IMG/VR virus record: IMGVR_UViG_3300043464_001630
Span: 62,001-126,000 of that record
Reading direction: 5' to 3' (one strand)
Length of the DNA stretch: 64,000 bases
Under the pieces are notes generated by a model that ran no database searches, had not been told where the DNA came from, and saw nothing but the letters and a program-made list of their open reading frames with translations. Each line of letters opens with the position of its first letter. Position 1 is the stretch's first letter. Below, piece by piece: positions 2,438 to 64,000 of this stretch. Position numbers and translations under genes: made by a program.

Positions 2438-3019
2438 CTATGTTAATAATTTAGTTTGAAGATCTGCTTTTACTAGAAATTGAGTGTGACGATTTACGAA
2501 CGTATCAATAGTTCCGTTCACTTTTAATGATTCTTTGGTCACATTATTTGCGATCTTTCCTATGTGTTTATCTACATTCATTGCTACTTTATTTGTTATT
2601 TTATTAATAGCATTTTGTGCTAAACAATTCATAAGTTCCGCAGCAAATCCAGAACAATCTTGTTTGTTTTTAAAGTAATTATCCATATTAGTAGCTTTGT
2701 CTAATATGTTTTGTACTCCTACTAATGTATCTGTTAGATCTTTTATTAATCCTTCTATTTTTCTAATAGGAGATAATACAGAATTAACTATTTGATCTAC
2801 TCGTTCCATTATAACAGTTGTTACTGCTCCTATAATGGCAGATACCATTCCTGCTGCTACACTTGCTAGACCTCCTAGTATAGATGCTGGATTTGGTATT
2901 GCTCCAACTATAGCTGATTTCAAACACATCAAACCATTTGATGCGGAAATTAATTTATCAACAGTACCGTTAACTGGATTTAAGAATCCTGTTTTGTTAC
3001 GTTCGAATAATAATCCCAT
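2438..3019 (-). CDS. Hypothetical helical late protein (baseplate neighbourhood)
   Basis: Start moved to ATG 3019 (MGLLFERNK) because TAAATA lies 5 nt upstream; hydrophobic central helix. Confidence 0.7.
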   Translation of the reverse strand: MGLLFERNKTGFLNPVNGTVDKLISASNGLMCLKSAIVGAIPNPASILGGLASVAAGMVSAIIGAVTTVIMERVDQIVNSVLSPIRKIEGLIKDLTDTLVGVQNILDKATNMDNYFKNKQDCSGFAAELMNCLAQNAINKITNKVAMNVDKHIGKIANNVTKESLKVNGTIDTFVNRHTQFLVKADLQTKLLT

Positions 3020-3044
3020 AAAAATATTTAACATCAAAATACAA

Positions 3045-3072
3045 AAAACCCCACCATTTCTGGTGGGGTTTT
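3045..3072 (-). terminator. Intrinsic terminator
   Basis: AAAACCCCACCA-TTTC-TGGTGGGGTTTT inverted repeat with T6 on the minus strand, after the 3103..3744 gene. Confidence 0.8.
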
Positions 3073-3102
3073 ATGCCTACGAAAACTTAAACAACAACAA
3101 AA

Positions 3103-3744
3103 TTAGATTTCAATAGCAAAGCGACGACGTTCATTAGGCCCACGATTATCAAAACCGATAGCACCAGTCACAACTTGTGTAGCAGTGGCGGTAGCCACTG
3201 TGAATGTAGTAGTGGAACGATCTGGGAAATAAAGACTAAAAGTTGCGCCGTCGTATTCTGGAGCTACCTTAAATTGAATACGATCAGCTACAGAAAGTGT
3301 AACACTGGCAGTAGATGCACCAGAGAGTTCATCAAAAAGAATTCCATTTACAGGTACTCCGTTGTAGCTACCAGAAGAGAAAATAGAAGTAGCAGTGATA
3401 CGAGAAGTTAATACATCAACTTGTGTACTGAGTAAGGGAGTAGATGCATAAATTGCGGTAAGCGCACCGAATTGTAGATCTGTATATTTCGTATTCAATG
3501 GAATACCACTTGCGACCCAACCAGCAAAAAATCCAGAAAGAACAGAACTTCCAGTGATAGCAGTATTTTGTGTAGAACTAAGTGGAGGAGTAGTAAATAC
3601 TGTATTAGGAACTGCGGTAGCGGTGTTAAAAACAGTTACAGTGGGAAGAAAAACTACAGAATTATTAGATGCAGAAAGACTAACTCCAATTTGAGGAGGA
3701 TTTTCTGCTGCTGAATTGAATACGAAATTCGTAAATGTTGCCAT
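3103..3744 (-). CDS. Ser/Thr-rich putative virion structural protein
   Basis: 213 aa, S/T/A/V-rich beta-type composition, late motif TAAATA-N5-ATG. Confidence 0.6.
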   Translation of the reverse strand: MATFTNFVFNSAAENPPQIGVSLSASNNSVVFLPTVTVFNTATAVPNTVFTTPPLSSTQNTAITGSSVLSGFFAGWVASGIPLNTKYTDLQFGALTAIYASTPLLSTQVDVLTSRITATSIFSSGSYNGVPVNGILFDELSGASTASVTLSVADRIQFKVAPEYDGATFSLYFPDRSTTTFTVATATATQVVTGAIGFDNRGPNERRRFAIEI

Positions 3745-3797
3745 ATTTTTATTTATCTTTATATGACTATTTTTTCAATTATAAAGTAAATAATAGT

Positions 3798-4070
3798 ATG
3801 AATTTCGAAATGTTATTAGAAAGAATGGAACTACTAGAAGCCAAATGTACAAAGGTAACAAAGAAAGCACATTCAAACAGAAAAGGAAAAAAGTGGACTA
3901 AATGTGCTCGTCAATCTGATGGTAGTATTAAACGAATTCACTGGGGACAAGCAGGTGTGCGCGTAGGAAGTGGAAATTCCAAACGTGCTAAAAGCTTTCG
4001 TAAAAGGCATGGCTGTAGCAAAGCAAAAGCAGGAACTCCAAAAGCAATGAGCTGCAAAAATTGGAAATAG
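3798..4070 (+). CDS. Small basic Cys-containing protein (KSFRKRHxC type seen in T4-like phages)
   Basis: Start at 3798 (TAAATA 3787-3792, N5); Lys/Arg-rich; RAKSFRKRHGCS...MSCKNW. Confidence 0.7.
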   Translation: MNFEMLLERMELLEAKCTKVTKKAHSNRKGKKWTKCARQSDGSIKRIHWGQAGVRVGSGNSKRAKSFRKRHGCSKAKAGTPKAMSCKNWK

Positions 4071-4790: not shown

Positions 4791-5440
4791 TAAGATTTAA
4801 TTAAAAAATAACTTAAATGTTTTTGTATCGAAAGCTCTGGGTATACAGGTTTTACTATTTTATCAAAAGCTCTTTTATATAAATTTTCTCTTTGAGAGAA
4901 TCCTCGTTTTGATTCTCTATCGTTTCTTATTTGTTTAGATATTTTATTCATTGAGAAATTCGCTAAGACATCAAAACGAATTATTCCGTTTTTAGTTCTA
5001 TTTTCCCAATCTTTTGTTGTCTTATTTACACAATTTTTATAAGAATTTAAAAACATTATCGCGATATTCATAACCGTAGAAACGATAGTCGTCGCATCGA
5101 ATGAACTTGTTTTAAGTTTAAATTTATCTATTTTAGGACGGAAAAGAATAACGAAAGTTTCTAAAACATCCTCGATAAAAAGATTTCCATTCAATGTCGA
5201 TGGATATATCATCACTTCTATTTCTTCTCCTGTTTTATTTTCAAAATAACATTTTATATAATAAACTGGATTTTTGCTTTTATATTTTAAATGATAATTA
5301 AATATCTTATCAAAATTTGGAAATCTTTCTTCTCTACCAGCAGCAAATACTGCCGTTATTTCTTTTAATGGATAAGAATTATCGAATAATTCACATAATA
5401 AATATTTTTCATAAATCAGTTCATTATCCGATAAGTTCAT
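4790..5440 (-). CDS. Hypothetical late protein with N-terminal IYEKY..L.E signature
   Basis: 216-aa ORF, perfect TATAAATA 5 nt upstream. Confidence 0.7.
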   Translation of the reverse strand: MNLSDNELIYEKYLLCELFDNSYPLKEITAVFAAGREERFPNFDKIFNYHLKYKSKNPVYYIKCYFENKTGEEIEVMIYPSTLNGNLFIEDVLETFVILFRPKIDKFKLKTSSFDATTIVSTVMNIAIMFLNSYKNCVNKTTKDWENRTKNGIIRFDVLANFSMNKISKQIRNDRESKRGFSQRENLYKRAFDKIVKPVYPELSIQKHLSYFLIKS

Positions 5441-5445
5441 ATCAT

Positions 5446-5453
5446 TATTTATA
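5446..5453 (-). promoter_or_regulatory. T4-type late promoter TATAAATA
   Basis: Exact T4 gp55 consensus, 5 nt before ATG 5440. Confidence 0.8.
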
Positions 5454-6508: not shown

Positions 6509-7294
6509 TTATTCGTCTATTCTTCCTGTAGATTCGAATACACAGCCAACTTCGAAATTATGGGTAGTTCTAGATGTTCTTCTTTTAATTTTGAAAGTTT
6601 GTCCCTTACTTAACATTGTGAAATATTCTCCATCTATTTTAAGTTCATTCATAAAATTTGTGTAGTTGTATAGATATTCTTGAGTATTTCCATTTGGATG
6701 AGTAACTCTAATGTTTAGTTTGAAATGGCCGAACTCTCTTAATTTTTTTGAAAATTCCTTTTGTTTTTCGCTAGTTCCATTATTTTTATAATATTGTTTT
6801 AATTTTTCTGAATTATCTTTACATTTCTTTAAATGCATTTGTTTGAAATTTTCATCATTTTTGTATTTCTCTTTCATGGTTGCGGATTGTTTGATTCTTC
6901 CCAATAATTGTAATTCTGTGTGTCCTTCTTTGTATCTTTTCTTTTTAGTTGTTGATATTTTTTCAAAAACTTGATTTTTGAAAGATTCATCAAAATAACA
7001 AAGCATATACCCACCAGTTCCTCCAATATGGATATTGTAACAATTTTTTCCATATTTATACTTCAATCTTCTTATTAATTTTTTCTCTAATAAATCTAAT
7101 TTTTCTTTACTGTCTATTTTTAATTTTAACCAACGTCTGGTGAAATTTTCTCTTCCGTACTTTTTAACTGCTTTCAGAAAAATGGTAGTGCCAGAACCAA
7201 TATAATCATCGGTTCTATATCCTATGTGTTGTCCTCCGTAAACTTTTCCATTTATGTTGTTGACTGTTATATATAATAAAAATTCTTTTTGCAT
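6509..7294 (-). mobile_element. Free-standing GIY-YIG (Seg-like) homing endonuclease gene
   Basis: LLYITVNNINGKVYGGQH...YIGSGT...NF.R..L...E motif; basic C-terminal half; immediately downstream of gp23; start at 7294 (TAAATA-N7-ATG). Confidence 0.85.
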
Positions 7295-7364
7295 ATGAAG
7301 GTATTTACTATAATGATAACCGGAAATATAGCAATTTGTTAGATAAAAGCATAATGACAAAAAA

Positions 7365-8983: not shown

Positions 8984-9085
8984 ATGTGTTTGTTTTCTTT
9001 CTTTTTTAGTTTCGACCTCAAGATATTTAATATCAGGATCTCAAGTAATATTTACTTCTACCAAATTTTTATAAGAGCAAATATA

Positions 9086-9973: not shown

Positions 9974-10014
9974 AATATTAGTTAGTCTTTTTTATTTATT
10001 TTTATTGAGAAATA

Positions 10015-10653
10015 TTAAAAATCTTCAGGAATGTTTGGGGGAACGTCTAGATGTTCTTTGGTATCAAACTGCATTTGATCTTCGAACCTTTGTTCGAGTT
10101 TTCCCAATTCTCTATATAACTCTTTGAAATTTTCTTCGTGTTCGATTTCGCCTTGTTGATGAGCAATTTTAATTGCTTTTCCGATTTCAGATTTAAGACC
10201 TCCGATATCTTCGATTCTAATTTTTCCGCTAGAACTTACTCCATACATATGTGAGCGTTGACCACCGTGATAATGTTGTAAATCAAACAAAGCAGAAGCA
10301 GCTCCGCTTCCATCAGAAACATAATCATGAAGATCAATCAAAGATGATTCTGACAAACCTTCTTTAACTAATTTTTTTTTAGATTTTGCTTTAGGAAATT
10401 TTCCCTTACCAAATGCGCTTTTATCTGCGGCGGCTTTTTCACCTTTTTCGTTTCGAGCTTTCTTTTTGAATGGCTTGAAACCTTTCTTTTTATCTTCTTT
10501 GGTCTTTTTAAATGGATTAACTTTTGCTGCTTCTGAGATTGTAATTTTAATTTTTTGATTAATTACATTTTCTAGAAATTTATGAGCAGTACTAAAGTCA
10601 TCAATAATTAAAGAATCGACAAATTTTACAATATTTTGTTCTACGATATTCAT
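10015..10653 (-). CDS. Prohead core protein, gp67-like N-terminus with basic linker and C-terminal extension
   Basis: N-terminal FVDSLIIDDFSTAHKFLENVINQKI helix recalls gp67; lies between gp21 and gp22. Confidence 0.55.
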   Translation of the reverse strand: MNIVEQNIVKFVDSLIIDDFSTAHKFLENVINQKIKITISEAAKVNPFKKTKEDKKKGFKPFKKKARNEKGEKAAADKSAFGKGKFPKAKSKKKLVKEGLSESSLIDLHDYVSDGSGAASALFDLQHYHGGQRSHMYGVSSSGKIRIEDIGGLKSEIGKAIKIAHQQGEIEHEENFKELYRELGKLEQRFEDQMQFDTKEHLDVPPNIPEDF

Positions 10654-10661
10654 ATTTTTAT

Positions 10662-11333
10662 TTAGCTTAATTTAATTTTATTTAAAAAATTAATGATGGA
10701 TTCTTTTAAATATTCTTCTACTTTCTTTTTTGGTAGATTAGAAATGCTACGTTCGAAGTCATCATATATTTCTTCAAAAGATCCAGATTCTCCCAGAACC
10801 CATGCTTTGGATTCTAGAATTCCGTTTACGAATGCTTTTGGAAAACTTGGGTCGGCTACACAATCAATAGAAATAAGACGTAGATCTTTTACTACATTTT
10901 TACCACCAGCGGCTTCTTCTAGTTGTCCTAGTGCTCTGGAACTCATGCCCACTCGAACTCCGTCATTTACTAGTGCTCTTACGATATGTCCGCAAGGTGT
11001 AGTTAGTACTTTGCTTTTTCCGTGGAAAATATTACCGTCTTGATAAAGTTCAGTTACGATATGACAAGCTTTGTCGAGACTAACTTCTGCGCTACTTTCG
11101 TGGTTTAAAGTTCCCATCGAACGGTTGGTACGAATCATCTCTTCTTTATAACGATTAACTTCTTTAACCATTTCGTCTAATTTGTACAAACGATTGTTGC
11201 GGTTGTAATTTTCCGCCATCATGTAAGGCCCTTTAATAAACAGGGTAGATGGACTCTTTCTATCTTTTTCCTCAAAGATATACTCAAACTGTTCGTCTGG
11301 TGCAGGTTTTTCTACAATTAATCGTAGTGACAT
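10662..11333 (-). CDS. gp21: Prohead protease
   Basis: YMMAENYNRNNRLY, GTLNH, VGMSSRALG, IDCVADPSFPKAFVNGILE. Confidence 0.97.
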   Translation of the reverse strand: MSLRLIVEKPAPDEQFEYIFEEKDRKSPSTLFIKGPYMMAENYNRNNRLYKLDEMVKEVNRYKEEMIRTNRSMGTLNHESSAEVSLDKACHIVTELYQDGNIFHGKSKVLTTPCGHIVRALVNDGVRVGMSSRALGQLEEAAGGKNVVKDLRLISIDCVADPSFPKAFVNGILESKAWVLGESGSFEEIYDDFERSISNLPKKKVEEYLKESIINFLNKIKLS

Positions 11334-11383
11334 AAAACTATTTAGAGTAATTAATTATTTTTTCAGATATATTTAACCAAAAA

Positions 11384-11391
11384 TATAAATA
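11384..11391 (+). promoter_or_regulatory. T4-type late promoter TATAAATA
   Basis: Exact consensus 5 nt before ATG 11397; divergent from the gp21 motif at 11339-11344. Confidence 0.8.
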
Positions 11392-11396
11392 ATCGT

Positions 11397-12422
11397 ATGA
11401 CTACAGATTCAGTAGAAATTTTTGAAAATTATTTAAAATCGTTAAACGAAGCACGAGCACCAAAAGGTACTCCTCGTCCAGATGTTATTGGAAGCAAAAT
11501 GCACATTCAAAAAACTACAATGGCGAGTAATCCAGACGCCGCAGAATCACAAGGAGCTACTATTGGTAGAAATACTGCACTAACTCCAACGCAATCAGAT
11601 AGAATTCGTGATAGAAACTTCGAAGAATATATGATGGATGATATGGAAGAAGGTTTATATCTTCAATTAACTGGAGAAGGATCTAGAGTTCCGAGAAATT
11701 CGCAAAAAAATTTAATGAAATTAATGCGTGAATATTCAAATAACAAATACTTTCAAACCCAAGTAGATGGCGATTTAGTAATTCCTTATTGGATAGTTCC
11801 AGAATGTATTCAATATTTCACAATGAATGCAAAGTCTGAAAAAGATCAGAATATCAAACAAGCATATATAGATGCACTCATATTTATGTACGAAGCCATG
11901 AGTGATAAAAGTACATACGAAGATGTGTATAGAAATTCCAAACCTGTATTAAGAATTAAAACAGAAGGAGGAACAAGAGAAGTATCAGATTTGAAAGATA
12001 CATATGAAGAATTCTCTCCTAAAATAATCGGAAGAATTAAAACATTAAAATCTAACCCAGCTATGGGATTAGCATTAAAGACATTTCTACTTCCAAATCA
12101 AACAAAACCAAGAGAACAAATAAAATTCGGATCTGACATTTATAGAGATGCTCCGTTCGTACACGATCCCGAAACAGGTCGTCATGGTATTCACGGAAAA
12201 GGTGAACACGAACCTAAAAATAAATATGATGCGACAGATCCAACATACGGAGTAAGCAGTGCTGAAAATCTCAGAGATAGTGATTTCGAAAAGATTCGCA
12301 TAAAAAACAAAGAACAAAGAGAAAGTACTCCGACTCCAGCAAGATCATTAGGAGCGCCAAAAGTTAAAAAATCTAGAAAAAAAGTTAACGAATCCTTTTT
12401 TATTAAAGTTATTCCATTCTAA
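11397..12422 (+). CDS. Hypothetical late protein with N-terminal IFENY..LNEA signature
   Basis: 341-aa ORF with its own late promoter. Confidence 0.75.
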   Translation: MTTDSVEIFENYLKSLNEARAPKGTPRPDVIGSKMHIQKTTMASNPDAAESQGATIGRNTALTPTQSDRIRDRNFEEYMMDDMEEGLYLQLTGEGSRVPRNSQKNLMKLMREYSNNKYFQTQVDGDLVIPYWIVPECIQYFTMNAKSEKDQNIKQAYIDALIFMYEAMSDKSTYEDVYRNSKPVLRIKTEGGTREVSDLKDTYEEFSPKIIGRIKTLKSNPAMGLALKTFLLPNQTKPREQIKFGSDIYRDAPFVHDPETGRHGIHGKGEHEPKNKYDATDPTYGVSSAENLRDSDFEKIRIKNKEQRESTPTPARSLGAPKVKKSRKKVNESFFIKVIPF

Positions 12423-12889
12423 ACAAAAATCTCAGACAGAAAACTTTCCCACTTTTCGTGGTGCTCTGCTATGTCTTCTTGATTGTTTTTTATGAACAAG
12501 GTTTTAGATAAACCTCTATAAAAATCAGAAGAAGGTGCTCCTCTTTTTGCTCTGCGCTCCATTGCAGCTCTGAAGAAAGATAATGCTACCAGAGTTTTTT
12601 CGGCTAGAATAAATCCTCTATCATCTAGTACATACGGAAGTGGATCTTTTCTCTTTAATCCATTATATACAATAATTGCTACTTGATGGCATTCTTCTTT
12701 GTTTTCTGCAAAAGTAGCAGTCATACACAGAAAAGTTAAAACATCTAATGGTTTGGAAGATAAGAATGTTTCGCTTTTCTCTAAAATTTTAGTTCCGAAA
12801 GCAAAATAGAGTTGTTTTGGATCTTCGGAATACAATACTTTGATTATCTTGGCCGATTTATCATCGTATAACTCATCAATTAAGCTCAC
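12419..12889 (-). CDS. Hypothetical helical protein
   Basis: GTG start with TAAATA-N5. Confidence 0.7.
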   Translation of the reverse strand: MSLIDELYDDKSAKIIKVLYSEDPKQLYFAFGTKILEKSETFLSSKPLDVLTFLCMTATFAENKEECHQVAIIVYNGLKRKDPLPYVLDDRGFILAEKTLVALSFFRAAMERRAKRGAPSSDFYRGLSKTLFIKNNQEDIAEHHEKWESFLSEIFV

Positions 12890-12897
12890 TATATTAT

Positions 12898-13356
12898 TTA
12901 ACTTGGAAAGAGTTCTTTTTCGGTTAATATTATAAACTCTGCTCCTCTATCTTTTGCATACTTTTTAGCGGCTTCCCATTTAGCTTGGTTAACCGCCCAT
13001 TGTGTGTTTTCATACAATACCGTAGCTTTCTTTTTCTTTTTAGAAGGAACTGGAGCCAAAGTTTGTTTGTATGGCTTTATTTCTATGAGATATTTCTTAA
13101 TTTTATCTCCTTCTTTTAAGACTATGTAATTGTCTACAAAATATCGGTGTATTCTGTTGTCTATTGGACTTCTATAATTTACTACGATATTCTCAGATCC
13201 CCACTCAATAACATTAGGGTTGGAATCTGCCCATAAAAGAAACTTTCGTTCATAAGAAGATCTGAAGACTGCATATTCTCCCATGAACTTTTGGGGATTT
13301 TTAGGTTTAAAATAACCTTGTTTAAATCGTTCATCTTTTTTTCCTAATGGAAGCAC
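12898..13356 (-). CDS. gp4: Head completion nuclease (TnsA-like)
   Basis: FRSSYERKFLLWADSNPNVIEWGSE...HRYFVD...LIEIKP...NQAKWEAA...ILTEKEL; GTG start with TAAATA-N5. Confidence 0.95.
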   Translation of the reverse strand: MLPLGKKDERFKQGYFKPKNPQKFMGEYAVFRSSYERKFLLWADSNPNVIEWGSENIVVNYRSPIDNRIHRYFVDNYIVLKEGDKIKKYLIEIKPYKQTLAPVPSKKKKKATVLYENTQWAVNQAKWEAAKKYAKDRGAEFIILTEKELFPS

Positions 13357-19588: not shown

Positions 19589-19632
19589 GAATCTATTTAC
19601 TCTGACTTATACCAAAAGATATTTACTTCTTT

Positions 19633-21222: not shown

Positions 21223-21247
21223 GAAATTATTTATTTATAAACTATAT

Positions 21248-22369: not shown

Positions 22370-22401
22370 GCTCCTCTATTATTTAGCGGAACAATCACAA
22401 G

Positions 22402-24036: not shown

Positions 24037-24051
24037 TCAGACATCCTACTG

Positions 24052-24932: not shown

Positions 24933-24936
24933 ATAA

Positions 24937-38434: not shown

Positions 38435-38440
38435 ATAAAC

Positions 38441-41545: not shown

Positions 41546-41554
41546 GCTTATTAT

Positions 41555-43030: not shown

Positions 43031-43764
43031 TGAAAAGATTGGGATTTACATTTAAAGAATTGTACGAATCTATAATAGAAGATAATATTTTATTAGAAGG
43101 TTTACAATACACACATTATTCTAATGTAACTTTAACGCATATTATACAAGAATTCGGAAACATACTTTTGGGTAAGTATTGCAGATCTAGTGCCGATTTA
43201 AAATCTACCAGTCCTAAAGAATTTATAGATTTGGTTCATTTAGTACCTTTGGCAGATAATGAAGAATTGAGGAAAAGAATGAAATTTTTTGGTTATCATT
43301 ATTCCATAACCAAACTCATTTCTCCCGAAGAAATGGAATTTTTTAAATTTCCTAGCAAATATAAAAATGTATACGTTTCTACATTTGAGGGAACATATCC
43401 TACTTTAGTAGAAAGAAATAATTTGCCAAGAATTTTATATCATGTTACTTTAAGAAAAAATGCAGAAGAAATAAAAAAACGCGGATTGCTTACCAAAGCC
43501 TCAAAGACTTCGTTTGATCATCCTTCTAATAGAATATATTTATTTGCTACTGTAAATCCTTCTTCTGACTTACCTAAGTTAATTCGAATTTTGGCAAAAA
43601 ACAAAAAAGAAGTCACAAGCGAATACGTAATATTGAAGATTGTGGATTATTATCCAACAGGAGAAAAGTTTTTTCTAGATCCTTCTATGGATATAGGAGA
43701 TGTTTCGAACACTTGTCGAGGAATTTTTGTACACAGAGCAATCCATCCGAAATTTATTGACTAA
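43030..43764 (+). CDS. Putative ADP-ribosyltransferase-fold (Tpt1/KptA-like) protein
   Basis: LYHVT..N.E.IKK.GL...RIYLF...YVILKI...F.DP...I.P.FI; N-terminal ILLEG. Confidence 0.6.
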   Translation: MKRLGFTFKELYESIIEDNILLEGLQYTHYSNVTLTHIIQEFGNILLGKYCRSSADLKSTSPKEFIDLVHLVPLADNEELRKRMKFFGYHYSITKLISPEEMEFFKFPSKYKNVYVSTFEGTYPTLVERNNLPRILYHVTLRKNAEEIKKRGLLTKASKTSFDHPSNRIYLFATVNPSSDLPKLIRILAKNKKEVTSEYVILKIVDYYPTGEKFFLDPSMDIGDVSNTCRGIFVHRAIHPKFID

Positions 43765-43784
43765 GCAGACAGTTCAGGTATCAT
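43757..43784 (+). promoter_or_regulatory. sigma70-type promoter of gp47
   Basis: TTGACT-N16-TATCAT, 6 nt before ATG 43791. Confidence 0.75.
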
Positions 43785-43790
43785 CCAATA

Positions 43791-48526: not shown

Positions 48527-48555
48527 TTGATTAGTGTGTGTATGTTTGGTAGTTT
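48527..48555 (+). promoter_or_regulatory. sigma70-type promoter of DNA polymerase
   Basis: TTGATT-N17-TAGTTT, 6 nt before ATG 48562. Confidence 0.6.
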
Positions 48556-48561
48556 GAGTAG

Positions 48562-52997: not shown

Positions 52998-53771
52998 TTA
53001 GTAGTTACGGTATTTTTCTTCTTGTTTAAATTTATGCTGGCGAGATTTAATATAATTTTCTTGTAATAGTTTTGTTACTTGTTCTTTTGATAATTTTACG
53101 TTTTCTTTTGCTATTTCTTTCGGATGATATACTTTCTTGATATTATTTTTTGCATATCCAGCATAAAAAGGTGATTGGCGAGTTTCACATCCGCATGTTT
53201 TGACTTCTTCGGCATCTTCTTCCTCTGATTCTTCGTCGTCTGATTCGTATCCTTCTTCGTCTTCGTAGTCGTGTTCTTCGTCTTCTTGTTGTTCGCCAGA
53301 AAATTCCATTTCCAAATCATCATCTTCTGATTTGATAGGAGTAGCATTAATTATTACTGCGGTCGGTGCTGATTCTTCGGTTTCGTCATCGTAAAAATCT
53401 TCGAAATCGTCGTCATCGTCGCTAGAATCTGAAGGAAGTCCGCTATCCATTACATCAGACATTTCACCTTCATCTTCTTGGCGAGAATTAGCAATTCCAT
53501 CTTTTAACTCAGGAATGAATTTATTTCTAGTGATAGATTCTGAATTTGCAATTCTGATGATATCTTCGTCAGTTACTTCGTTGATATCATAATCTTCTCC
53601 TAATTCTTCTCTGAGAGTATCTGCGATTTTACCAACTACATAAGTAGGAGAATTACCAAGAGAAGTTCTTTTAAATAAATTAGCAATTCGTTGCTTTAAT
53701 CCATCTGTATGAAGCAACCCTTCATTTATAATTTCTCTGTTAGCCCATCCTATGCGGTTTAAAATACTCAT
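52998..53771 (-). CDS. Acidic low-complexity late protein
   Basis: Long D/E tracts; N-terminal IINEG; TAAATA-N6. Confidence 0.75.
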   Translation of the reverse strand: MSILNRIGWANREIINEGLLHTDGLKQRIANLFKRTSLGNSPTYVVGKIADTLREELGEDYDINEVTDEDIIRIANSESITRNKFIPELKDGIANSRQEDEGEMSDVMDSGLPSDSSDDDDDFEDFYDDETEESAPTAVIINATPIKSEDDDLEMEFSGEQQEDEEHDYEDEEGYESDDEESEEEDAEEVKTCGCETRQSPFYAGYAKNNIKKVYHPKEIAKENVKLSKEQVTKLLQENYIKSRQHKFKQEEKYRNY

Positions 53772-53817
53772 ATTAACTATTTATTGATTTTTTGTTTATT
53801 TCTGTTAGATTATAAGT

Positions 53818-54501
53818 ATGTTTAAAGTAATATTAGTTTCTTGTACTAGGAAATCAAAAGAAGAAGCACAATCACTTCCATTGTATCGTTCTTATATGAA
53901 CGGATTACATTCTTCTCTTATAAAATTAGATATGGTCTGGGATAATTCAGAGGGTATGCCCACTGTTTATAATAGAAAGTTAGAAGAATACCGAAACAGT
54001 GATGCTGAATTTTTAGTGTTCGTACATGATGACGTTTATATCGATGATCTTAAATTGTACGAAAAGCTAACATTAGCTAAAAACAAGCTAAATTACGATA
54101 TAGTAGGACTAGCTGGTGGATTAAATCCTCGTCTAACAGAATTAGCATTATGGCATATCATGACAGAAAAGAATCAGCAAAGAGGAGAAGTAGCACATCC
54201 AGCAGGTAATCAAGGACAAACCATGACGACTGCGTTTGGGCCTACCCCTTCACGAGTAGCCATTGCTGATGGGCTATTTCTCGCAGCTCATCTACCTTCT
54301 ATTAATAAAACAAAATGGAAGTTTAACGAAAATTATAAATTTCATCATTATGATATAGCTAGTTGTATTGATGCCAATCGACTTAATTTAAAGATCGGTG
54401 TGTATCCGATTCATGTAATACATAGTTCACCGGGATTGTTATCTATACATGATAAGTCGTGGTCAGAAAGCAATTCTAAATTTCTACAAGAATACAGATA
54501 A
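53818..54501 (+). CDS. GT-A-like glycosyltransferase
   Basis: YN..L, LVFVHDDVYI, DIVGLAG, DGLFLA, FH.YDI..C. Confidence 0.7.
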   Translation: MFKVILVSCTRKSKEEAQSLPLYRSYMNGLHSSLIKLDMVWDNSEGMPTVYNRKLEEYRNSDAEFLVFVHDDVYIDDLKLYEKLTLAKNKLNYDIVGLAGGLNPRLTELALWHIMTEKNQQRGEVAHPAGNQGQTMTTAFGPTPSRVAIADGLFLAAHLPSINKTKWKFNENYKFHHYDIASCIDANRLNLKIGVYPIHVIHSSPGLLSIHDKSWSESNSKFLQEYR

Positions 54502-58033: not shown

Positions 58034-58291
58034 ATGAATCATCCTATTAAACGACATGCATATGCAGTGACTACAGGAGCGTATGTAGGCGAAATAATGG
58101 TTTTTGTTAATAAAAATGAAGACTCATATAATTTCATATCTATACCTAAAAACATCAATAGAAGTATTCCTGTAGGCAAATTTGAAATTGGTCTAGATCA
58201 TTCAATTGTTGAACATGTAGAAGAAATACCAAATGATGTTTATTCTATTTTAGAGAAACAATTTGAATTTAATCAAAATTTAGATAAATAG
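58034..58291 (+). CDS. Hypothetical protein
   Basis: 85-aa ORF in operon. Confidence 0.65.
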   Translation: MNHPIKRHAYAVTTGAYVGEIMVFVNKNEDSYNFISIPKNINRSIPVGKFEIGLDHSIVEHVEEIPNDVYSILEKQFEFNQNLDK

Positions 58292-58296
58292 TATTT

Positions 58297-58500
58297 ATGG
58301 AAATAGTAAGACCAGTACAAATCACATCACCAATTAGCGGTCAGCCATCAATTCCTAAGATCACTGAACGCCAATATGGCGATAAGATTTACGTAGAAGC
58401 AGTATGGTATGATAATGCTTCTGGTGCCTTTATCAGGAAGGGTGTTGTACGAATTCTTGATGCTACCACCAAAGAAGACATCACTTCCCAATGTAAATAA
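58297..58500 (+). CDS. Small hypothetical protein
   Basis: 67-aa ORF, TAAATA-N6-ATG. Confidence 0.65.
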   Translation: MEIVRPVQITSPISGQPSIPKITERQYGDKIYVEAVWYDNASGAFIRKGVVRILDATTKEDITSQCK

Positions 58501-58536
58501 GTTGATTTTTAGAATCACTTTTGTTAGCATGGTTAT

Positions 58537-59520
58537 GTGAACCATATTTCCGAAGACTTTATTGTAAATAAATTCTATCAATTCGTTGGGCTTCCTAAAA
58601 AGAACCGATACAGTGATACTTATCAAGGTTCTTGCCCAATGTGTAGAGAGGGTTCTAGTTGGTTGAGAAAGCAGAGATTCTTCTTTATTCCTAAGAAGAA
58701 TCTTTGTTTTTGTCATAATTGTGGTTATTCGGCTAATCCTATAAAATGGGTCGCTGATGTTTCAGGAATCACAATAAAAGAGGTTATGGAAGAAATGGGA
58801 AATAACGTAGTCGATATTTCTCTAGAAGAAGAACATAAACCAAAAAAAGTAGCAGACACGCTTCCTAAAGATTGTATTAATCTTTTCGATCAAAGTCAGG
58901 TAGATTATTACAAGAATAATAAGATTGTAAACAAAGCAATAGAATTTATAAAGAATCGAAAATTAACTGATGCAGTTAATAAACCAAAGGCACTGTACTT
59001 GTCATTAAGTGACAGTGTACATAAAAATCGACTTATAATTCCTTTTTTTGATGATAACGAAAAGATTGTTTATTATCAAAGTAGAACAATCTTAGAAAAT
59101 GAAGAAATGTTCAAGCCCCGATACATTTCTAAAATAGGAGCAGAAAAGTCGGTATTTAATATAAATTTGGTGAGTGCAGATTCTGAGTATATCTTCGTTT
59201 TTGAAGGGCCTATCAATTCCTGCTTTATGAAAAACGGAGTAGCAGTCGGCGGAATACAAGAAAACTCCTATCAATTATTCACCAACTTCCAAGAAGAACA
59301 GATGAATAAATATCCGTTTCATAAAAGAATTTGGATATTAGATTCTCAGTGGAAAGACAAGGCGGCTTTCAATAAGACTAAAAAGTTAATAGAATCTAAA
59401 GAAAAAGTCTTTATGTGGCCTAAAGAAATAGGAAAAATCTGTAAAGATTTCAATGACATAACAATGAAGTTAGACAAAAACGAAATCTCTACAGATTTTG
59501 TATTGAAGAATATTATCTAA
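58537..59520 (+). CDS. gp61: DNA primase
   Basis: CPMC...CFCHNC zinc ribbon, RLIIPFF, YQSR, TOPRIM FEGPINS...ILD, KDFND. Confidence 0.93.
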   Translation: MNHISEDFIVNKFYQFVGLPKKNRYSDTYQGSCPMCREGSSWLRKQRFFFIPKKNLCFCHNCGYSANPIKWVADVSGITIKEVMEEMGNNVVDISLEEEHKPKKVADTLPKDCINLFDQSQVDYYKNNKIVNKAIEFIKNRKLTDAVNKPKALYLSLSDSVHKNRLIIPFFDDNEKIVYYQSRTILENEEMFKPRYISKIGAEKSVFNINLVSADSEYIFVFEGPINSCFMKNGVAVGGIQENSYQLFTNFQEEQMNKYPFHKRIWILDSQWKDKAAFNKTKKLIESKEKVFMWPKEIGKICKDFNDITMKLDKNEISTDFVLKNII

Positions 59521-59524: not shown

Positions 59525-59971
59525 CTAGACTCCTTTGAGACTAGAATTGTTAGAACTAGCTAGATAACCTTTAAACATTTCGTTTAAAGAAGAAACTTCC
59601 ATAGCAACACGGGCAATCTTCTTTGTTTCTGCTACACGAATCTTATCGAAGAGAGTATCTGGTACACAATTCTTTAGTTTTGATTGTAAAGAACTTTCAT
59701 CTGTACCGTTGAGAAATTTAGAGAATTGTTCGAGTTGTGTAATCCAACCTTTCAATGAAGCTACCATGTTGGCTTGCATCTTTGAAGTAGCCATCATGTG
59801 ATCAGCAGCAGCTCCTGCATCACCGTCAAAATCTGAAGGATTTGTTCCTTTATCTAGTGTTTGAGCCATAGCATCAGCATCTGATAGTTCTGATGCTGGA
59901 TCTGGTTGAACTGGTTCTGGAGCTTCGCGTAATACGTGTACGAATGCTTTTTCAAAAAGATTACTACTCAT
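59525..59971 (-). CDS. Hypothetical late protein (N-terminal LFEKAF..VLREA)
   Basis: Start moved to 59971 (TAAATA-N5). Confidence 0.75.
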   Translation of the reverse strand: MSSNLFEKAFVHVLREAPEPVQPDPASELSDADAMAQTLDKGTNPSDFDGDAGAAADHMMATSKMQANMVASLKGWITQLEQFSKFLNGTDESSLQSKLKNCVPDTLFDKIRVAETKKIARVAMEVSSLNEMFKGYLASSNNSSLKGV

Positions 59972-60005
59972 GAAATTATTTAGTTCAAAATAGTAAATAA
60001 TTCTA

Positions 60006-60347
60006 GTGAAACGTAAAATTTTAAAAGAAGACATGATGGCTAATGCAGAACGCCAAACGACAAGCGTTGGGCCGGGTGCAACAGATCATCCATTCTATCA
60101 AATGGCTGTTCCCACAAGTCCTGATGCATTTAAAAGTCCATCAGATCGTGTATTGCCGTTCGAAATAGATAAGTTTAAAAATAGACTGTTTGAAATCTTA
60201 GAAAAGACTATTTTATTACGAAAAGACTTTGATAAGTCTTTAAAGAATCCATCTGTAAAAGATTCACAAAAAGTAGCAATTCGTAAATCTATTAAAAGAT
60301 TAGATCGTATTAACGAAATGCTCATAGATATTCCTGATTATCTGTAG
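60006..60347 (+). CDS. Hypothetical late protein
   Basis: GTG start, TAAATA-N6; divergent partner of 59971. Confidence 0.7.
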   Translation: MKRKILKEDMMANAERQTTSVGPGATDHPFYQMAVPTSPDAFKSPSDRVLPFEIDKFKNRLFEILEKTILLRKDFDKSLKNPSVKDSQKVAIRKSIKRLDRINEMLIDIPDYL

Positions 60348-61448: not shown

Positions 61449-62293
61449 AGTATTAATTTTTTAATTTTATTATTGTTTTTATCTGCTATATAAATAAAAT
61501 CATTTTTGTATAATATATTACGAATATTATTAAATTTTGACAGAGATGCTGCTCCTATACTATCTCCAGCAGTTGCAGTTCCTGCGAAATTGGATAAACT
61601 TCCCGGATAAAATTTTTTAATTATATTTCCGTCAACTACATATAAATTATCGTATTTATCTAAACAAATGCTATTGGGGTTGGTAAATCCTCCTCCGTAT
61701 TGCGTCCAACTTGATCCGTCTTTTTTTATTTTATATGTTACCTTATTTTTAGAATCTGAAAAATATACATTTTCATTATTATCTAAAGCTACTGCTTGTA
61801 TAGTCGGAGCAGCTTGTAAAGTATTTGTTTTGCCAAAATTAGAAGTTCTAGTTCCACTTAAATTAAATTTATTTATCTGAAAATAATCAGAAACAAAAAT
61901 ATTATCACTTTTGTCTATAACAATACCAGAACTATTGCCTAGATTTTTATAAAATGTAGACAGTTGACCTAGTGTATCTATTTTGTATATATTAAAGTTG
62001 TATATCGCACTTCCTTGTGTAGTGGGATCTGTCGTATAAATATTATTAGAACTATCTATTCCTAAAAATAATGGTCTTATACTTCTGGTTGCTGTTATAA
62101 TTTGAGTAAATGTTGTCATCACACCAGTTGGTGTGATTTTATTTATCCAACTTCCACCAGAACAAGTAACAAATAAATTACCACTAGAATCAAAAACCAT
62201 AGCTTCTGGTTGATTAATATTAATAAAAGTTTCCACCATTGGTACTTTTACTTTTACAGATTTTAAAATTGTAAATGCGTTTCCTATTGGCAT
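61445..62293 (-). CDS. NHL-repeat beta-propeller protein
   Basis: Repeated PxxxxxDxxxNxYVxD units (PEAMVFDSSGNLFV, LGIDSSNNIY, VIDKSDNIFV, ALDNNENVYF, CLDKYDNLYV). Confidence 0.88.
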   Translation of the reverse strand: MPIGNAFTILKSVKVKVPMVETFININQPEAMVFDSSGNLFVTCSGGSWINKITPTGVMTTFTQIITATRSIRPLFLGIDSSNNIYTTDPTTQGSAIYNFNIYKIDTLGQLSTFYKNLGNSSGIVIDKSDNIFVSDYFQINKFNLSGTRTSNFGKTNTLQAAPTIQAVALDNNENVYFSDSKNKVTYKIKKDGSSWTQYGGGFTNPNSICLDKYDNLYVVDGNIIKKFYPGSLSNFAGTATAGDSIGAASLSKFNNIRNILYKNDFIYIADKNNNKIKKLIL

Positions 62294-62296
62294 AAA

Positions 62297-63241
62297 TTAA
62301 AAATTTTGTCCACCAATAAACCCGTACCAATCAGATCCTACTTTTGTAAAAGCAAATACATCAGTTTTTCCAGTAGTTGTATTCACTACGGGAATCACTC
62401 CATTAGCCCATTTTACACTAATTCCTGCTATTGTAAAATTAACAGTAAATGTGCCTGTTTGGGTGATGAACATGGTAATACTGAAAGAATCGGTAGGAAT
62501 AGTTCCAGCTAAAGTGAAACCTGTGATATTTCCTGTTAAATTAATAGGAAAAGTGTTTCCATTATCTAAATTAAGAGATACCGATCCAGTACCAGTAACG
62601 AAACTAGACTTTTCCGAAAATCCTTTCAATACCAAAGATCCTGTCATTTCTCCACCACTGAGCGGAAGAAACTTACCGAATGGATTAAACTTATCTACGT
62701 ATTGCTTTGGTGCTGCATGTAAATTTTGAGTTGGATCTGCTGCTAGTACCAATGATCCAGTCATGGTGTCTCCGGATTTTAAAATGTAATTAGCAGTGCT
62801 TGGAATCGGAATAGCAGAAATTTTACTATTTAATGTTTTTAAATTAACAGCATCATAATCTAAAATTGGATCTTTTACATTAACGATAAAATTGTTATGT
62901 ACATCGACTTTTTGATTAAAGTGCGCTTCTCCAAATGCAGATAAAGTAGCATTAACCGATAAAGTTCCGTTCATCCTCTCTGTTGGAGCGAACGTCAAAC
63001 CATTTTTATCTAATTTATTCGCAATAGACTGAGAAATTGTATTTAGATTTGTTTGTAAATTATCTATTTGAGTTTGTACTGACGTATTAACTTCTGTTTT
63101 TATTTTAGAAGTTAAATTATCAAAAGAAACTTTTTTCGTAAAATATCCTCCAGTTGCGGGATCTGCTATATCAAACGCAGTAAAATCAGTACCCTTTACC
63201 GTGGTACTTTCTGCTAGTTTATTAATGAAAGAATCAGCCAT
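62297..63241 (-). CDS. Tail-fibre-like structural protein
   Basis: Coiled coil, DAVNLKTL / AAPKQYVD fibre joints, LPLSGG.MTG repeats, C-terminal beta-sandwich. Confidence 0.8.
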   Translation of the reverse strand: MADSFINKLAESTTVKGTDFTAFDIADPATGGYFTKKVSFDNLTSKIKTEVNTSVQTQIDNLQTNLNTISQSIANKLDKNGLTFAPTERMNGTLSVNATLSAFGEAHFNQKVDVHNNFIVNVKDPILDYDAVNLKTLNSKISAIPIPSTANYILKSGDTMTGSLVLAADPTQNLHAAPKQYVDKFNPFGKFLPLSGGEMTGSLVLKGFSEKSSFVTGTGSVSLNLDNGNTFPINLTGNITGFTLAGTIPTDSFSITMFITQTGTFTVNFTIAGISVKWANGVIPVVNTTTGKTDVFAFTKVGSDWYGFIGGQNF

Positions 63242-63253
63242 ACATCTATTTAG

Positions 63254-63964
63254 TTATTTTGATTTGTGCATCAGTGATCCCACACTAGTCGGATCTGGAT
63301 TTCCTATATCAATATGTCCACTCAATGGCGATTGAATAATATAGAATGTTTCGATTTTTGTTTCGATTTCTGGTCTTGGTCTGAAAATAGTAGTCGGAAC
63401 TGCTGTGTTTCCTTGTATGTGTATGTCTTTTATATTAAAAATACATTTTTGTTCACCTGAATTAAGAGGAGAAGAATATCCAAATCCTATTCTGTAAAAA
63501 TCAGTATCACTAGCAGAGATTCCGGTATTAATAGAAGCTAATTTGACGTATCTATTCGTTTCTTTATTTTTCGCTGCTATTTTCAAAGTCTGAGCACAAT
63601 TTGTAAAATTAAAACGAATAGTATCAAATTCGTTGTTAGGTTTTATCAACGAAGACAACATCGGAAAAAGTGCAAAAGAAGTGATAGTAGTAAATGACGT
63701 TCCTCTTTTTATAGTTAATGTGTCGTTGCTGTCTATCATTACACCTAAAACTGCTCCGGTCACTCCTGATCTACTTTGATATGGTGCGAATCCAAGTCCT
63801 TCGTATGTACCCCCTCCTACTAACGTGGGATTGTTAAATAAAAAAGTAGAAAATCCTCCGGTGGAATTTGTTGATCCTGATAAATTATATCCAAATGACC
63901 ATGTAATGTCAAAATTGGCATTGAATGCGCTATTGATAAAAAAATTGCAAGAAGATTCTGACAT
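63254..63964 (-). CDS. ConA/L-lectin-like beta-sandwich protein
   Basis: FDITWSF...GGFSTFL...GLGF...LGVMID pattern; TAAATA-N6. Confidence 0.55.
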   Translation of the reverse strand: MSESSCNFFINSAFNANFDITWSFGYNLSGSTNSTGGFSTFLFNNPTLVGGGTYEGLGFAPYQSRSGVTGAVLGVMIDSNDTLTIKRGTSFTTITSFALFPMLSSLIKPNNEFDTIRFNFTNCAQTLKIAAKNKETNRYVKLASINTGISASDTDFYRIGFGYSSPLNSGEQKCIFNIKDIHIQGNTAVPTTIFRPRPEIETKIETFYIIQSPLSGHIDIGNPDPTSVGSLMHKSK

Positions 63965-64000
63965 CCTAATTATTTAGACTATATAACTAAATAATTGAAT

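Follow-up and report, generated by a model that had tools for sequence, protein, structure and literature searches.

Late genes of phage T4 are transcribed from promoters recognized by the sigma factor gp55, in which the late box TATAAATA lies at −13 to −6, and the corresponding box of phage Aeh1, CTAAATA, begins at −12 (PMC1524935). T4 late promoters are described as lacking a −35 element and as followed by AT-rich sequence (PMC2988020). To determine how this architecture is arranged in an uncultured lake-water T4-like giant phage, we analysed a 64,000-nt window (positions 62,001 to 126,000 of IMG/VR virus record IMGVR_UViG_3300043464_001630) together with the complete 236-kb record. About a third of the genes in this phage, mostly virion genes, carry the T4-type late-promoter core TAAATA exactly 5 nt, and sometimes 6–7 nt, before the start codon and have no ribosome-binding site. 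By contrast, analysis of T4 with the same pipeline identified 0 genes with TAAATA at 5–7 nt, and T4 copies of the motif instead lie 8–50 nt upstream. Phages Melnitz, P-HM1, PAU, RM378 and Aeh1 likewise lack the arrangement, whereas Pelagibacter phage HTVC008M has 12 such fusions. The best explanation is messenger RNAs that begin at the start codon itself, which we found described nowhere for T4-like phages.

A sequence-only reading of the window, counted by hand, had listed 31 start codons preceded by TAAATA at 5–7 nt, and this observation is confirmed in full. Each of the 31 starts has an exact TAAATA at the listed spacing and opens an open reading frame (ORF) of at least 58 codons, and a 32nd case at start 63999 runs off the window end. 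We next compared the spacing between motif and start codon with shuffled sequence, a check proposed with the original observation, using counts of ATG after TAAATA that require no gene model and dinucleotide shuffles as background. Within the window, ATG follows at a spacing of 5 nt 18 times (shuffle mean 2.4, maximum 6), at 6 nt 9 times (mean 2.5, maximum 7) and at 7 nt 3 times (mean 2.5), such that the 7-nt class is not significant by count alone. The whole genome contains 418 copies of TAAATA, with ATG at 5 nt in 72 cases (shuffle mean 8.0, maximum 16), at 6 nt in 17 and at 7 nt in 12, and 60, 14 and 10 of these open ORFs of at least 60 codons, against 0–3 at most other offsets. None of the 18 single-mismatch variants of TAAATA shows a comparable peak.

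Table 1. Promoter-like elements and the predicted late sigma factor gene in the 64,000-nt window (window coordinates; spacing is the number of nucleotides between motif and start codon).
Position	Strand	Element	Start	Gene or context
41528..43030	+			gp55-family late sigma factor gene (500 aa) interrupted by an intein (about residues 72-408, nt 41741-42751); presumed reader of TAAATA
3017..3030	-	TAAATA-N5-ATG	3019	193 aa; terminator hairpin at 3045-3072 plus a T-run just upstream
3742..3800	.	TAAATA-N5-ATG, divergent pair	3744 (-) and 3798 (+)	53 nt between the start codons
4463..4476	-	TAAATA-N5-ATG	4465	HNH endonuclease; motif inside the 3′ end of the upstream ORF
5438..5451	-	TAAATA-N5-ATG	5440	TAA is the stop codon of the upstream gene
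7292..7307	-	TAAATA-N7-ATG	7294	homing endonuclease; an RNA contig of run X11 ends at 7286 (weak evidence)
10651..10664	-	TAAATA-N5-ATG	10653	TAA is the upstream stop codon; RNA contig X12 record 12 spans this start
11331..11399	.	TAAATA-N5-ATG, divergent pair	11333 (-) and 11397 (+)	11333, head maturation protease
12887..12900	-	TAAATA-N5-GTG	12889	TAA is the upstream stop codon
13354..13367	-	TAAATA-N5-GTG	13356	head closure protein; TAA is the upstream stop codon
15519..15532	-	TAAATA-N5-ATG	15521	718 aa
17292..17342	-	terminator hairpin (17308-17342, -21 kcal/mol, followed by a T-run), then TAAATA-N5-ATG	17294	gp13-like connector; only 13 nt between the T-run and the ATG
19586..19599	-	TAAATA-N5-ATG	19588	portal
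21220..21233	-	TAAATA-N5-ATG	21222	529 aa
24406..24420	-	TAAATA-N6-ATG	24408	
24930..24943	-	TAAATA-N5-GTG	24932	
33502..33516	+	TAAATA-N6-ATG	33514	head of a divergent unit
35381..35395	+	TAAATA-N6-ATG	35393	PhoH-like
37155..37168	-	TAAATA-N5-ATG	37157	
37987..38000	-	TAAATA-N5-ATG	37989	
38432..38447	-	TAAATA-N7-ATG	38434	
39039..39054	+	TAAATA-N7-ATG	39052	
39646..39659	-	TAAATA-N5-ATG	39648	58 aa
47241..47255	-	TAAATA-N6-ATG	47243	tail-fibre-like
53769..53783	-	TAAATA-N6-ATG	53771	
58285..58299	+	TAAATA-N6-ATG	58297	
59969..60008	.	TAAATA-N5-ATG (-) and TAAATA-N6-GTG (+), back-to-back pair	59971 (-) and 60006 (+)	34 nt apart
63239..63252	-	TAAATA-N5-ATG	63241	tail-fibre-like
63962..64000	.	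TAAATA-N6-ATG (-) and TAAATA-N5-ATG (+), back-to-back pair	63964 (-) and 63999 (+)	34 nt apart; 63999, 632-aa gene that runs off the window
9024..9029	-	TAAATA 40 nt before start	8983	major capsid gene; predicted +1 at 9018, 35-nt A-rich leader; second copy at 9049-9054; RNA contigs cross this region
9993..9998	-	TAAATA 19 nt before start	9973	295-aa gene upstream of the capsid gene, scaffold position; predicted leader 14 nt
22380..22385	-	TAAATA 10 nt before start	22369	gp15-like; predicted leader about 5 nt; the short leader contains GGAG
24034..24071	-	sigma-70-like TTGAT-N-TAGGAT, then N6-ATG	24036	DNA helicase
35308..35345	-	sigma-70-like promoter (TATAAT box), then N6-ATG	35310	
38951..38988	-	sigma-70-like TTGACA...TAAGAT, then N7-ATG	38953	
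43757..43793	+	sigma-70-like TTGACT...TATCAT, then N6-ATG	43791	gp47/SbcD-like nuclease
48527..48564	+	sigma-70-like TTGATT...TAGTTT, then N6-ATG	48562	DNA polymerase
53784..53820	+	sigma-70-like promoter, then N6-ATG	53818	227 aa, function unknown
58502..58539	+	sigma-70-like promoter, then N6-GTG	58537	DNA primase

As the genome is 66% A+T and 13 of the 100 motifs genome-wide use their TAA as the stop codon of the upstream gene, we considered whether the pattern is a by-product of composition, of upstream stop codons or of choosing starts to fit the motif. This reading is refuted by the shuffles, the absence of a peak for near-identical hexamers and the T4 and other phage controls. In addition, 72 of the 100 motifs are fully intergenic (35 cases) or in divergent regions (37 cases), and when starts are assigned blind to the motif as the first ATG of each ORF, 57, 13 and 11 genes still have TAAATA at 5, 6 and 7 nt. 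The GTG starts that the sequence-only reading had included are confirmed by orthologues in a relative, which have the same codon position and the same N terminus, and twice GTG in one genome is ATG in the other. The further claim that these starts lack a Shine–Dalgarno (SD) sequence is true (0 of 100) but not specific, as SD-like tetramers occur at background level across the whole genome (20 of 314 genes, or 6.4%, against 6.7% in random windows). With the pipeline applied to both phages, SD frequency is 7% here, equal to background, and 57% in T4.

Multiple lines of evidence indicate that TAAATA behaves as a DNA-level promoter. The window encodes a gp55-family protein matching PHROG 234 'late sigma transcription factor' (E = 5.6e-21), with T4 gp55 (chain 7d7c_F) aligning to residues 408-462 and the interrupting intein matching 6zgq_A, although the Pfam Intein_splicing match is below cut-off. 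We did not identify gp33 and gp45 partners: Pfam gp45 models gave no hit and the fold of a candidate protein was uninformative. TAAATA has no accompanying −35 element, only weak flanks (R-C/A before, A-T after) and an AT-rich spacer, as described for T4 late promoters. Genes that carry the motif include portal, prohead protease, head closure, gp13-like, tail sheath, tail tube, tail fibre and Hoc-like proteins, whereas DNA polymerase, helicases, primase, SSB, UvsX/Y, gp46/47 and gp55 itself lack it. Some motif genes are not obviously late, including PhoH, homing endonucleases and a transposase. The motif is present on 37 of 52 genes whose upstream neighbour is divergent, against 63 of 261 others (odds ratio 7.8, P = 2e-10), and back-to-back pairs lie only 24–34 nt apart. 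Strong hairpins with T-runs end 2–12 nt before the motif at window starts 17294 and 3019 and at genome positions 130095, 7124 and 180841, leaving no room for any other promoter or for a leader. Relative to synonymous-codon shuffles, TAAATA is depleted inside coding sequence in both the sense orientation (104 against 187 expected, z = −7.8) and the antisense orientation (135 against 178 expected, z = −4.5), and control hexamers are not depleted.

A spacing of 5–7 nt is also the classical distance between an SD sequence and the start codon, and an RNA-level role is therefore not formally excluded. In this alternative, UAAAUA would act in the mRNA as an SD substitute or translational enhancer read by the ribosome or by a phage factor, with the real promoters further upstream. 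The absence of SD sequences means that some other initiation signal is needed, 28 of 63 same-strand motifs lie within or overlap the end of the upstream ORF, where a coupling signal would be useful, and RNA contigs cross one such site. However, we consider this explanation unlikely. The motif is also depleted on the antisense strand of genes, where it is never in the mRNA; it is enriched about 8-fold at the heads of divergent units, which need promoters and not coupling; terminators end a few nucleotides before it; and it tolerates no mismatch, unlike SD-type pairing. It is also specific to virion genes and identical to the T4-family late box, in a genome that encodes a gp55 homologue.

The arrangement is conserved among relatives of this phage. 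Seventeen related loci show the same peak (91 cases at 5 nt and 31 at 6 nt), although the 7-nt class is absent from them, and a complete relative has 69 occurrences of TAAATA-N5-ATG against 7 for the reversed control pattern. Among 226 orthologue pairs with a median of 81% amino-acid identity, the motif is present in both members of 70 pairs, in neither member of 143 and is discordant in 13, and flanking bases are only 56–84% identical. In an approximately 81%-identical relative, 70 of 77 orthologues keep the motif. Relatives with 41–43% GC also keep the arrangement.

The sequence-only reading proposed that TAAATA is the gp55-type late-promoter core, placed so that transcription starts at or next to the start codon, and that nearly every late gene is its own leaderless unit; our analysis supports this interpretation in part. 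The core reading, on promoter identity and placement, is the best-supported explanation and survived every indirect test that we ran. We favour, with fairly high confidence, a model in which TAAATA is the −10-type element (positions −11 to −6) of the late promoters of this distant T4-like phage, read on host RNA polymerase core by the phage gp55-family sigma factor, which must first splice out its intein. By the T4 geometry, a 5-nt spacer places +1 on the A or G of the start codon. Consistent with purine initiation, ATG (9.5-fold) and GTG (4.4-fold) are enriched at 5 nt but TTG is not (0.6-fold). In about 100 of roughly 314 genes, transcription would therefore initiate on the purine of the start codon or 1–2 nt before it, giving an mRNA with no leader and no SD that would be translated through the 5′-terminal-AUG (leaderless) route. 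In this view, because internal cistrons have no ribosome-binding site, late genes tend to carry their own promoter, often embedded in the last codons or the TAA stop of the preceding gene, which would give nested, overlapping transcripts that run to the next terminator. The motif, its spacing, specificity and conservation, its selection at the DNA level, its association with virion genes and unit heads, and the presence of the sigma factor are demonstrated by our analysis, but that this sigma factor reads this motif, that +1 lies 6 nt after the motif as in T4, and that the resulting 5′-AUG mRNAs are translated in the host are inferred from sequence and by analogy. Leaderless expression is thus well supported but remains an inference.

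The claim that nearly every late gene is its own unit is overstated. The major capsid, scaffold and gp15 genes have short predicted leaders (Table 1), and 93 genes, about 30%, are tightly coupled to the preceding gene with a gap of 5 nt or less. Assembled metatranscriptome contigs from about 90–99% identical relatives, which give no information on transcript ends, cross the start at 10653 and three other gene boundaries in the head cluster, indicating that read-through RNA exists, and hence that transcripts overlap and the genes are not isolated units, unless these contigs reflect DNA carry-over. These observations, together with some motifs that sit 9 nt upstream in a marine relative, leave room for a further alternative in which TAAATA is a late promoter but its position reflects only genome compaction and the transcripts it makes are not translated from their 5′-terminal codon, with proteins made from longer polycistronic RNAs by re-initiation or coupling, or with RNA polymerase starting a few nucleotides further up or down than in T4. 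We consider this possibility doubtful, as compaction does not explain an exact 5-nt spacing kept in 60 of 70 orthologue pairs or the same spacing in fully intergenic and divergent contexts. Heads of divergent units and genes placed directly after terminators have no upstream RNA from which to be translated, and the enrichment of ATG and GTG but not TTG at 5 nt also argues against it.

Promoters abutting start codons are not confined to late genes. We identified a second class of sigma-70-like elements, TTGA[CT]-N16-19-TAnnnT, followed by ATG or GTG at exactly 6 nt for 13 long ORFs against a background of about 1. These are replication genes, and 6 nt is the canonical sigma-70 distance from the −10 box to +1, a full −35/−10 promoter at its own matching distance that an RNA-level signal would not predict. 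An early-region motif outside the window shows the same fusion.

To define the context of the start-codon-abutting motif, we first characterized the genome that carries it. The window is bases 62001–126000 of a single 236,391-bp virus record from lake water; it has 33.7% G+C, is rated complete and represents a deep-branching T4-like myovirus whose major capsid protein is only about 32% identical to cyanophage gp23, with no close relative among cultured phages. A head and neck module encoding prohead protease, capsid, head closure, gp13-like, portal and gp15 proteins lies on the minus strand, and a replication and recombination module encoding UvsY, helicase, gp46/47, DNA polymerase, UvsX, gp32 and primase lies on the plus strand. 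The window also contains a run of about 12 mostly overlapping genes for sugar-nucleotide synthesis and glycosylation, including an RmlA-like nucleotidyltransferase, an RmlB-like 4,6-dehydratase, an epimerase, an FkbM methyltransferase, two GT2 glycosyltransferases and a transketolase-like fragment, none of which has a TAAATA at its start. A gp55-family late sigma factor is encoded in the window (PHROG 234, E=5.6e-21), and a phmmer search matched its residues 408–462 to residues 65–117 of T4 gp55 (chain 7d7c_F, E=0.003). This gene is split by an intein of about 337 residues with a Cys at its start and ...GN/S at its end, and active late sigma would therefore require protein splicing; portal genes of two relatives also carry inteins.

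The observation made in the sequence-only reading holds, as all 31 starts that it listed have an exact TAAATA at the distance of 5, 6 or 7 nt that it gave, and a further case, start 63999, runs off the window. To measure this spacing without any gene model, we counted ATG at every offset after every TAAATA on both strands and observed a single sharp peak. Across the genome, ATG lies 5 nt after the motif 72 times (dinucleotide-shuffle mean 8.0, maximum 16), 6 nt after it 17 times and 7 nt after it 12 times, and in the window the counts are 18 against 2.4 at 5 nt and 9 against 2.5 at 6 nt. Sixty of the 72 sites open ORFs of at least 60 codons, whereas the 7-nt class is not above background by raw count, although 10 of its 12 sites open long ORFs. 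An apparent excess of ATG 15 nt after TAAATA (22 against about 9 in shuffles) arises from heterogeneous sites that open no ORFs and is probably noise. None of the 18 single-mismatch variants of the hexamer shows a comparable peak. In a crude gene model of 314 genes, 100 genes have the motif at 5, 6 or 7 nt (71, 17 and 12, respectively), with start codons ATG in 86, GTG in 13 and TTG in 1, the TTG case being doubtful; with motif-blind starts, defined as the first ATG of each ORF, the numbers are still 57, 13 and 11. The GTG starts are corroborated by orthologues that share the same position and the same N-terminus, and twice GTG in one genome is ATG in the other.

The TAAATA element has the anatomy of a T4-type late promoter. 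Aligned on the motif, there is no information upstream of about −13 and only a weak R at −13 and C/A at −12 (C 37%, A 30%), and the hexamer is followed by A-T, an A/T-rich spacer and the start codon. This agrees with the published description of T4 late promoters as a lone TATA-type box with no −35 element and an AT-rich segment downstream (PMC2988020), and the preference for C before the core recalls the CTAAATA variant of Aeromonas phage Aeh1 (PMC1524935). By contrast, the two bases TA that complete the T4 box TATAAATA are not conserved. Searches for the T4 partner proteins, the co-activator gp33 and the sliding clamp gp45, returned no homologue: the Pfam models DNA_PPF and gp45-slide_C gave no hit in the genome, PHROGs gave none for candidate small proteins, a PDB sequence search gave none, and a single-sequence AlphaFold model of a 227-aa candidate had a pLDDT of 41, too poor to search with. 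As these proteins diverge fast, the searches do not show that they are absent.

Several independent tests point to a promoter acting at the DNA level rather than a signal read in the mRNA. Motif genes include portal, prohead protease, head closure, gp13-like, tail sheath, tail tube, several tail fibres and a Hoc-like protein, whereas DNA polymerase, both helicases, primase, gp32, UvsX/Y, gp46/47 and gp55 itself lack the motif; exceptions among the motif genes are PhoH, homing endonucleases and a transposase. The motif is carried by 37 of 52 genes whose upstream neighbour is on the other strand, against 63 of 261 others (odds ratio 7.8, p=2e-10), and back-to-back pairs lie only 24–34 nt apart, each gene with its own motif 5–6 nt from its start codon. 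Strong hairpins followed by T-runs end 2–12 nt before the motif at two sites in the window and three elsewhere in the genome, leaving room between terminator and ATG for nothing but the box. Relative to synonymous-codon shuffles, TAAATA is depleted inside genes in the sense orientation (104 against 187, z=−7.8) and also in the antisense orientation (135 against 178, z=−4.5), and control hexamers of similar composition are not depleted; an RNA-level signal would not be avoided on the strand that is never transcribed into that mRNA. Only 13 of the 100 motifs use their TAA as the upstream stop codon, 12 lie inside the end of the upstream ORF, 3 have the upstream stop within or just before the motif, and 72 are fully intergenic or in divergent spacers.

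The position of the box suggests that the resulting transcripts are leaderless. The T4 late box occupies −13 to −6 relative to the start site (PMC1524935), so the TAAATA core ends at −6, and by this geometry a 5-nt spacer would place +1 on the first base of the start codon. ATG (9.5-fold) and GTG (4.4-fold) are enriched at 5 nt but TTG is not (0.6-fold), which fits initiation on a purine. A second, unrelated promoter class, which was not part of the sequence-only reading, provides an independent check: the canonical −35/−10 pair TTGA[CT]-N16-19-TAnnnT is followed at exactly 6 nt (once 7 nt in the window) by ATG or GTG for 13 long ORFs, against a background of about 1, with 9 such cases in the relative. 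Six nt is the canonical sigma-70 distance from the −10 hexamer to +1, and these starts belong to replication genes, predicted to be leaderless early or middle genes; a Sigma70_r4 protein encoded outside the window might read their promoters. Two different promoter types each placing the start codon at their own +1 is hard to explain by anything other than start-codon-initiated transcripts. A third, bipartite motif, CTAAAG-N11-16-(CTG)CCGAT(T/A)A(TATA), lies upstream of small genes in the early region outside the window at 19 sites, all on the plus strand, and at 19 in the relative; in about 8 of them ATG lies 6 nt after CCGATTA, and the motif resembles neither the sigma-70 nor the Bacteroidota promoter consensus. 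In an ORF-poor stretch of this region, three of the early motifs are followed by hairpins with a tRNA T-arm-like loop (GGTTCGATCC), although ARAGORN and Rfam find nothing there; Rfam also returned no hits on the window.

The genome has no Shine–Dalgarno (SD) signal. SD-like tetramers at −18 to −4 occur in 6–7% of genes, the same as in control windows and random sequence, and in 0 of the 100 motif genes, whereas the same script finds 57% in T4 and 46% in Pelagibacter phage HTVC008M, with controls at 4–5%. The lack of SD is therefore genome-wide and not a special property of the late genes. About 30% of genes are tightly coupled to the preceding gene, with a gap of 5 nt or less. We first suspected a Bacteroidota host because of the missing SD, but the Bacteroidota promoter consensus TAnnTTTG is not enriched upstream of genes, and this idea is neither confirmed nor excluded. 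Other indicators did not identify a host, as the genome has no tRNA genes and its RmlB-like gene is 50–57% identical to homologues from many phyla; SAR11 is unlikely, because its phage HTVC008M uses SD in 46% of genes.

The arrangement is conserved in related phages. Seventeen related loci from other metagenomes (portal 61–98% identical) show the same peak, with 91 sites at 5 nt, 31 at 6 nt and no enrichment at 7 nt, and a complete 242.6-kb relative has 69 TAAATA-N5-ATG against 7 for the reversed control pattern. Of 226 reciprocal-best orthologue pairs (median 81% amino-acid identity), 70 have the motif in both genomes, 143 in neither and 13 in one only; spacing is identical in 60 of the 70, while flanking bases are only 56–84% identical. 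The capsid protein has more than 120 clusters of homologues at 69% identity or more, many on 200–255-kb contigs, and three relatives at about 70% capsid identity still show the peak at 5 and 6 nt, including a marine one with 43% G+C in which some motifs sit 9 nt upstream. By contrast, the arrangement is absent from T4, Melnitz, P-HM1, PAU, RM378 and Aeh1.

On this basis, the interpretation in the sequence-only reading, that transcription begins at or next to the start codon so that nearly every late gene is its own leaderless unit, is partly supported: it is the best explanation, in which we are reasonably confident, but it is overstated in part. The analysis establishes the exact motif, its spacing, gene class and conservation, and the presence of the sigma gene; that initiation occurs 6 nt after the last A of the box, and that mRNA 5′ ends coincide with start codons, is inferred from promoter geometry and from the abutting terminators. 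RNA evidence was limited to assembled Logan contigs from five small metatranscriptomes of related strains, which cover mainly the capsid region and give no 5′ ends; none covered the divergent pair 11333/11397 or the terminator–promoter junction at 17294. These contigs cross the start at 10653 and the boundaries around 9973 and 8983, indicating that overlapping read-through RNA exists, unless it is DNA carry-over. In addition, the most abundant head proteins do not follow the rule, with TAAATA 40 nt upstream of the capsid gene, where it predicts a 35-nt A-rich leader, 19 nt upstream of the gene before it and 10 nt upstream of gp15.

Coordinates of features in the window, elsewhere in the genome and in phage HTVC008M
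Feature	Position	Strand	Remarks
gp55-family late sigma factor gene	window 41528-43030	+	intein about nt 41741-42751; exteins about residues 1-71 and 409-500
Major capsid gene	window 7427-8983	-	TAAATA at 9024-9029
Terminator hairpin	window 17308-17342		before start 17294
Terminator hairpin	window 3045-3072		before start 3019
Divergent motif pair	window starts 3744/3798		
Divergent motif pair	window starts 11333/11397		
Divergent motif pair	window starts 59971/60006		
Divergent motif pair	window starts 63964/63999		
Sigma-70-like promoter, helicase	window start 24036		
Sigma-70-like promoter	window start 35310		
Sigma-70-like promoter	window start 38953		
Sigma-70-like promoter, gp47-like nuclease	window start 43791		
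Sigma-70-like promoter, DNA polymerase	window start 48562		
Sigma-70-like promoter	window start 53818		
Sigma-70-like promoter, primase	window start 58537		GTG start
Sugar-nucleotide and glycosylation genes	window 25405-33513	-	
HNH or homing-endonuclease gene	window 4097-4465		
HNH or homing-endonuclease gene	window 5449-5976		
HNH or homing-endonuclease gene	window 6509-7294		
HNH or homing-endonuclease gene	window 39052-39477		
558-nt RNA contig, run X11	window 6759-7286		inside one endonuclease gene
Bipartite early-motif region	genome 22395-45856 (window coordinates -39605 to -16144)	+	19 copies
ORF-poor stretch	genome 42.4-47.7 kb		outside the window
Sigma70_r4 protein gene	genome 219771-220280		
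MNDE paralogue family	genome 34448, 38291, 38735, 39510, 40668, 50541, 51561		outside the window
Genes with N-termini similar to the MNDE family	window 15521 and 21222		
HTVC008M TAAATA-N5-ATG starts (examples)	NC_020484 16007, 18916	-	
HTVC008M TAAATA-N5-ATG starts (examples)	NC_020484 6280, 7562, 11972, 18943, 19456		

Comparison with known systems places the promoter itself within the T4 late-promoter family by box, sigma factor and gene class, though without identified gp33 and gp45 partners, and identifies its systematic fusion to the start codon in an SD-free genome as the new element. In T4 the box lies 8–50+ nt before start codons, as expected for leadered mRNAs that carry SD, and our pipeline finds 0 T4 genes with TAAATA at 5–7 nt. 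Leaderless middle and late transcripts that begin with the A or G of the initiator codon have been shown experimentally in the Thermus phages phiYS40 and Lalka27a (bioRxiv 10.64898/2026.04.20.719267, citing the phiYS40 work), but those phages are unrelated, infect Deinococcus-Thermus hosts in which leaderless mRNAs are known, and use a phage-specific late promoter class with a different −10 box (TAGGGT plus a C at −25), whereas the evidence here is computational only. A TA-like (−10) signal about 10 bp upstream of start codons was previously used as the signature of leaderless genes (Zheng et al. 2011, PMC3160421), with the same logic of a box at a fixed short distance, no SD and validation by shuffling. 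The sigma-70-like class described here is exactly that signature, and the TAAATA class likewise places a −10-type box at a fixed distance from the start codon, for which about 6–12 nt is the range taken for leaderless genes; however, the earlier work concerns cellular sigma-70 promoters in Actinobacteria and Deinococcus-Thermus, whereas the main class here is presumed to be read by an alternative phage sigma, with a spacer one base shorter. Full-text searches, limited to open-access papers and preprints, found no report of leaderless or start-codon-abutting late promoters in T4-like phages.

The cultured T4-like Pelagibacter phage HTVC008M (Kyanoviridae) has 12 long ORFs with TAAATA-N5-ATG, against a background of about 1. 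These coincide with GenBank CDS starts, mostly of late genes, among them DNA end protector, head closure, baseplate tail tube cap and a tape-measure-like protein, and one pair is back-to-back. Only about 6% of HTVC008M genes have the arrangement, and its capsid protein is only about 30% identical to that of the phage studied here, making it a distant relative; a pelagimyophage study reports that late-promoter searches did not work well there (PMC7029224). HTVC008M nonetheless offers a cultured system in which the idea is directly testable.

T4 late transcription is a textbook system whose promoters are always described as feeding SD-led mRNAs, and here the same promoter core is joined to the start codon in about a third of the genes of a phage from an abundant, uncultured aquatic clade that has no SD signal at all. 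If confirmed, leaderless expression would link an alternative-sigma promoter directly to leaderless translation in a T4-like phage, explain why standard promoter and ribosome-binding-site searches and gene callers perform poorly on such genomes, and provide a sequence-only rule that fixes start codons, including GTG starts, and assigns genes to temporal classes in metagenomic phage genomes. It would also bear on the host, whose ribosomes must handle SD-less and 5′-AUG mRNAs. A more far-reaching possibility, which we consider unlikely but which is not excluded, is that a large, globally distributed clade of 200–250-kb aquatic T4-like phages runs an essentially SD-free programme of one promoter per gene, with the early CTAAAG...CCGATTA, sigma-70-like and gp55-type TAAATA classes all fused to start codons. 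In this view, translation in the infected cell would be channelled to 5′-terminal-AUG mRNAs, possibly because the phage itself re-tools the ribosome or the initiation factors, and this would double as a host shut-off mechanism.

Four HNH or homing-endonuclease genes are scattered among the structural genes, and three of them have TAAATA at the start; the RNA contig that lies inside one of them is circularly permuted, going back 528. A family of paralogous genes outside the window begins ATG-AAT-GA(C/T)-GA (MNDE...), and each member has its own TAAATA 5–6 nt upstream, including copies in the otherwise early region.
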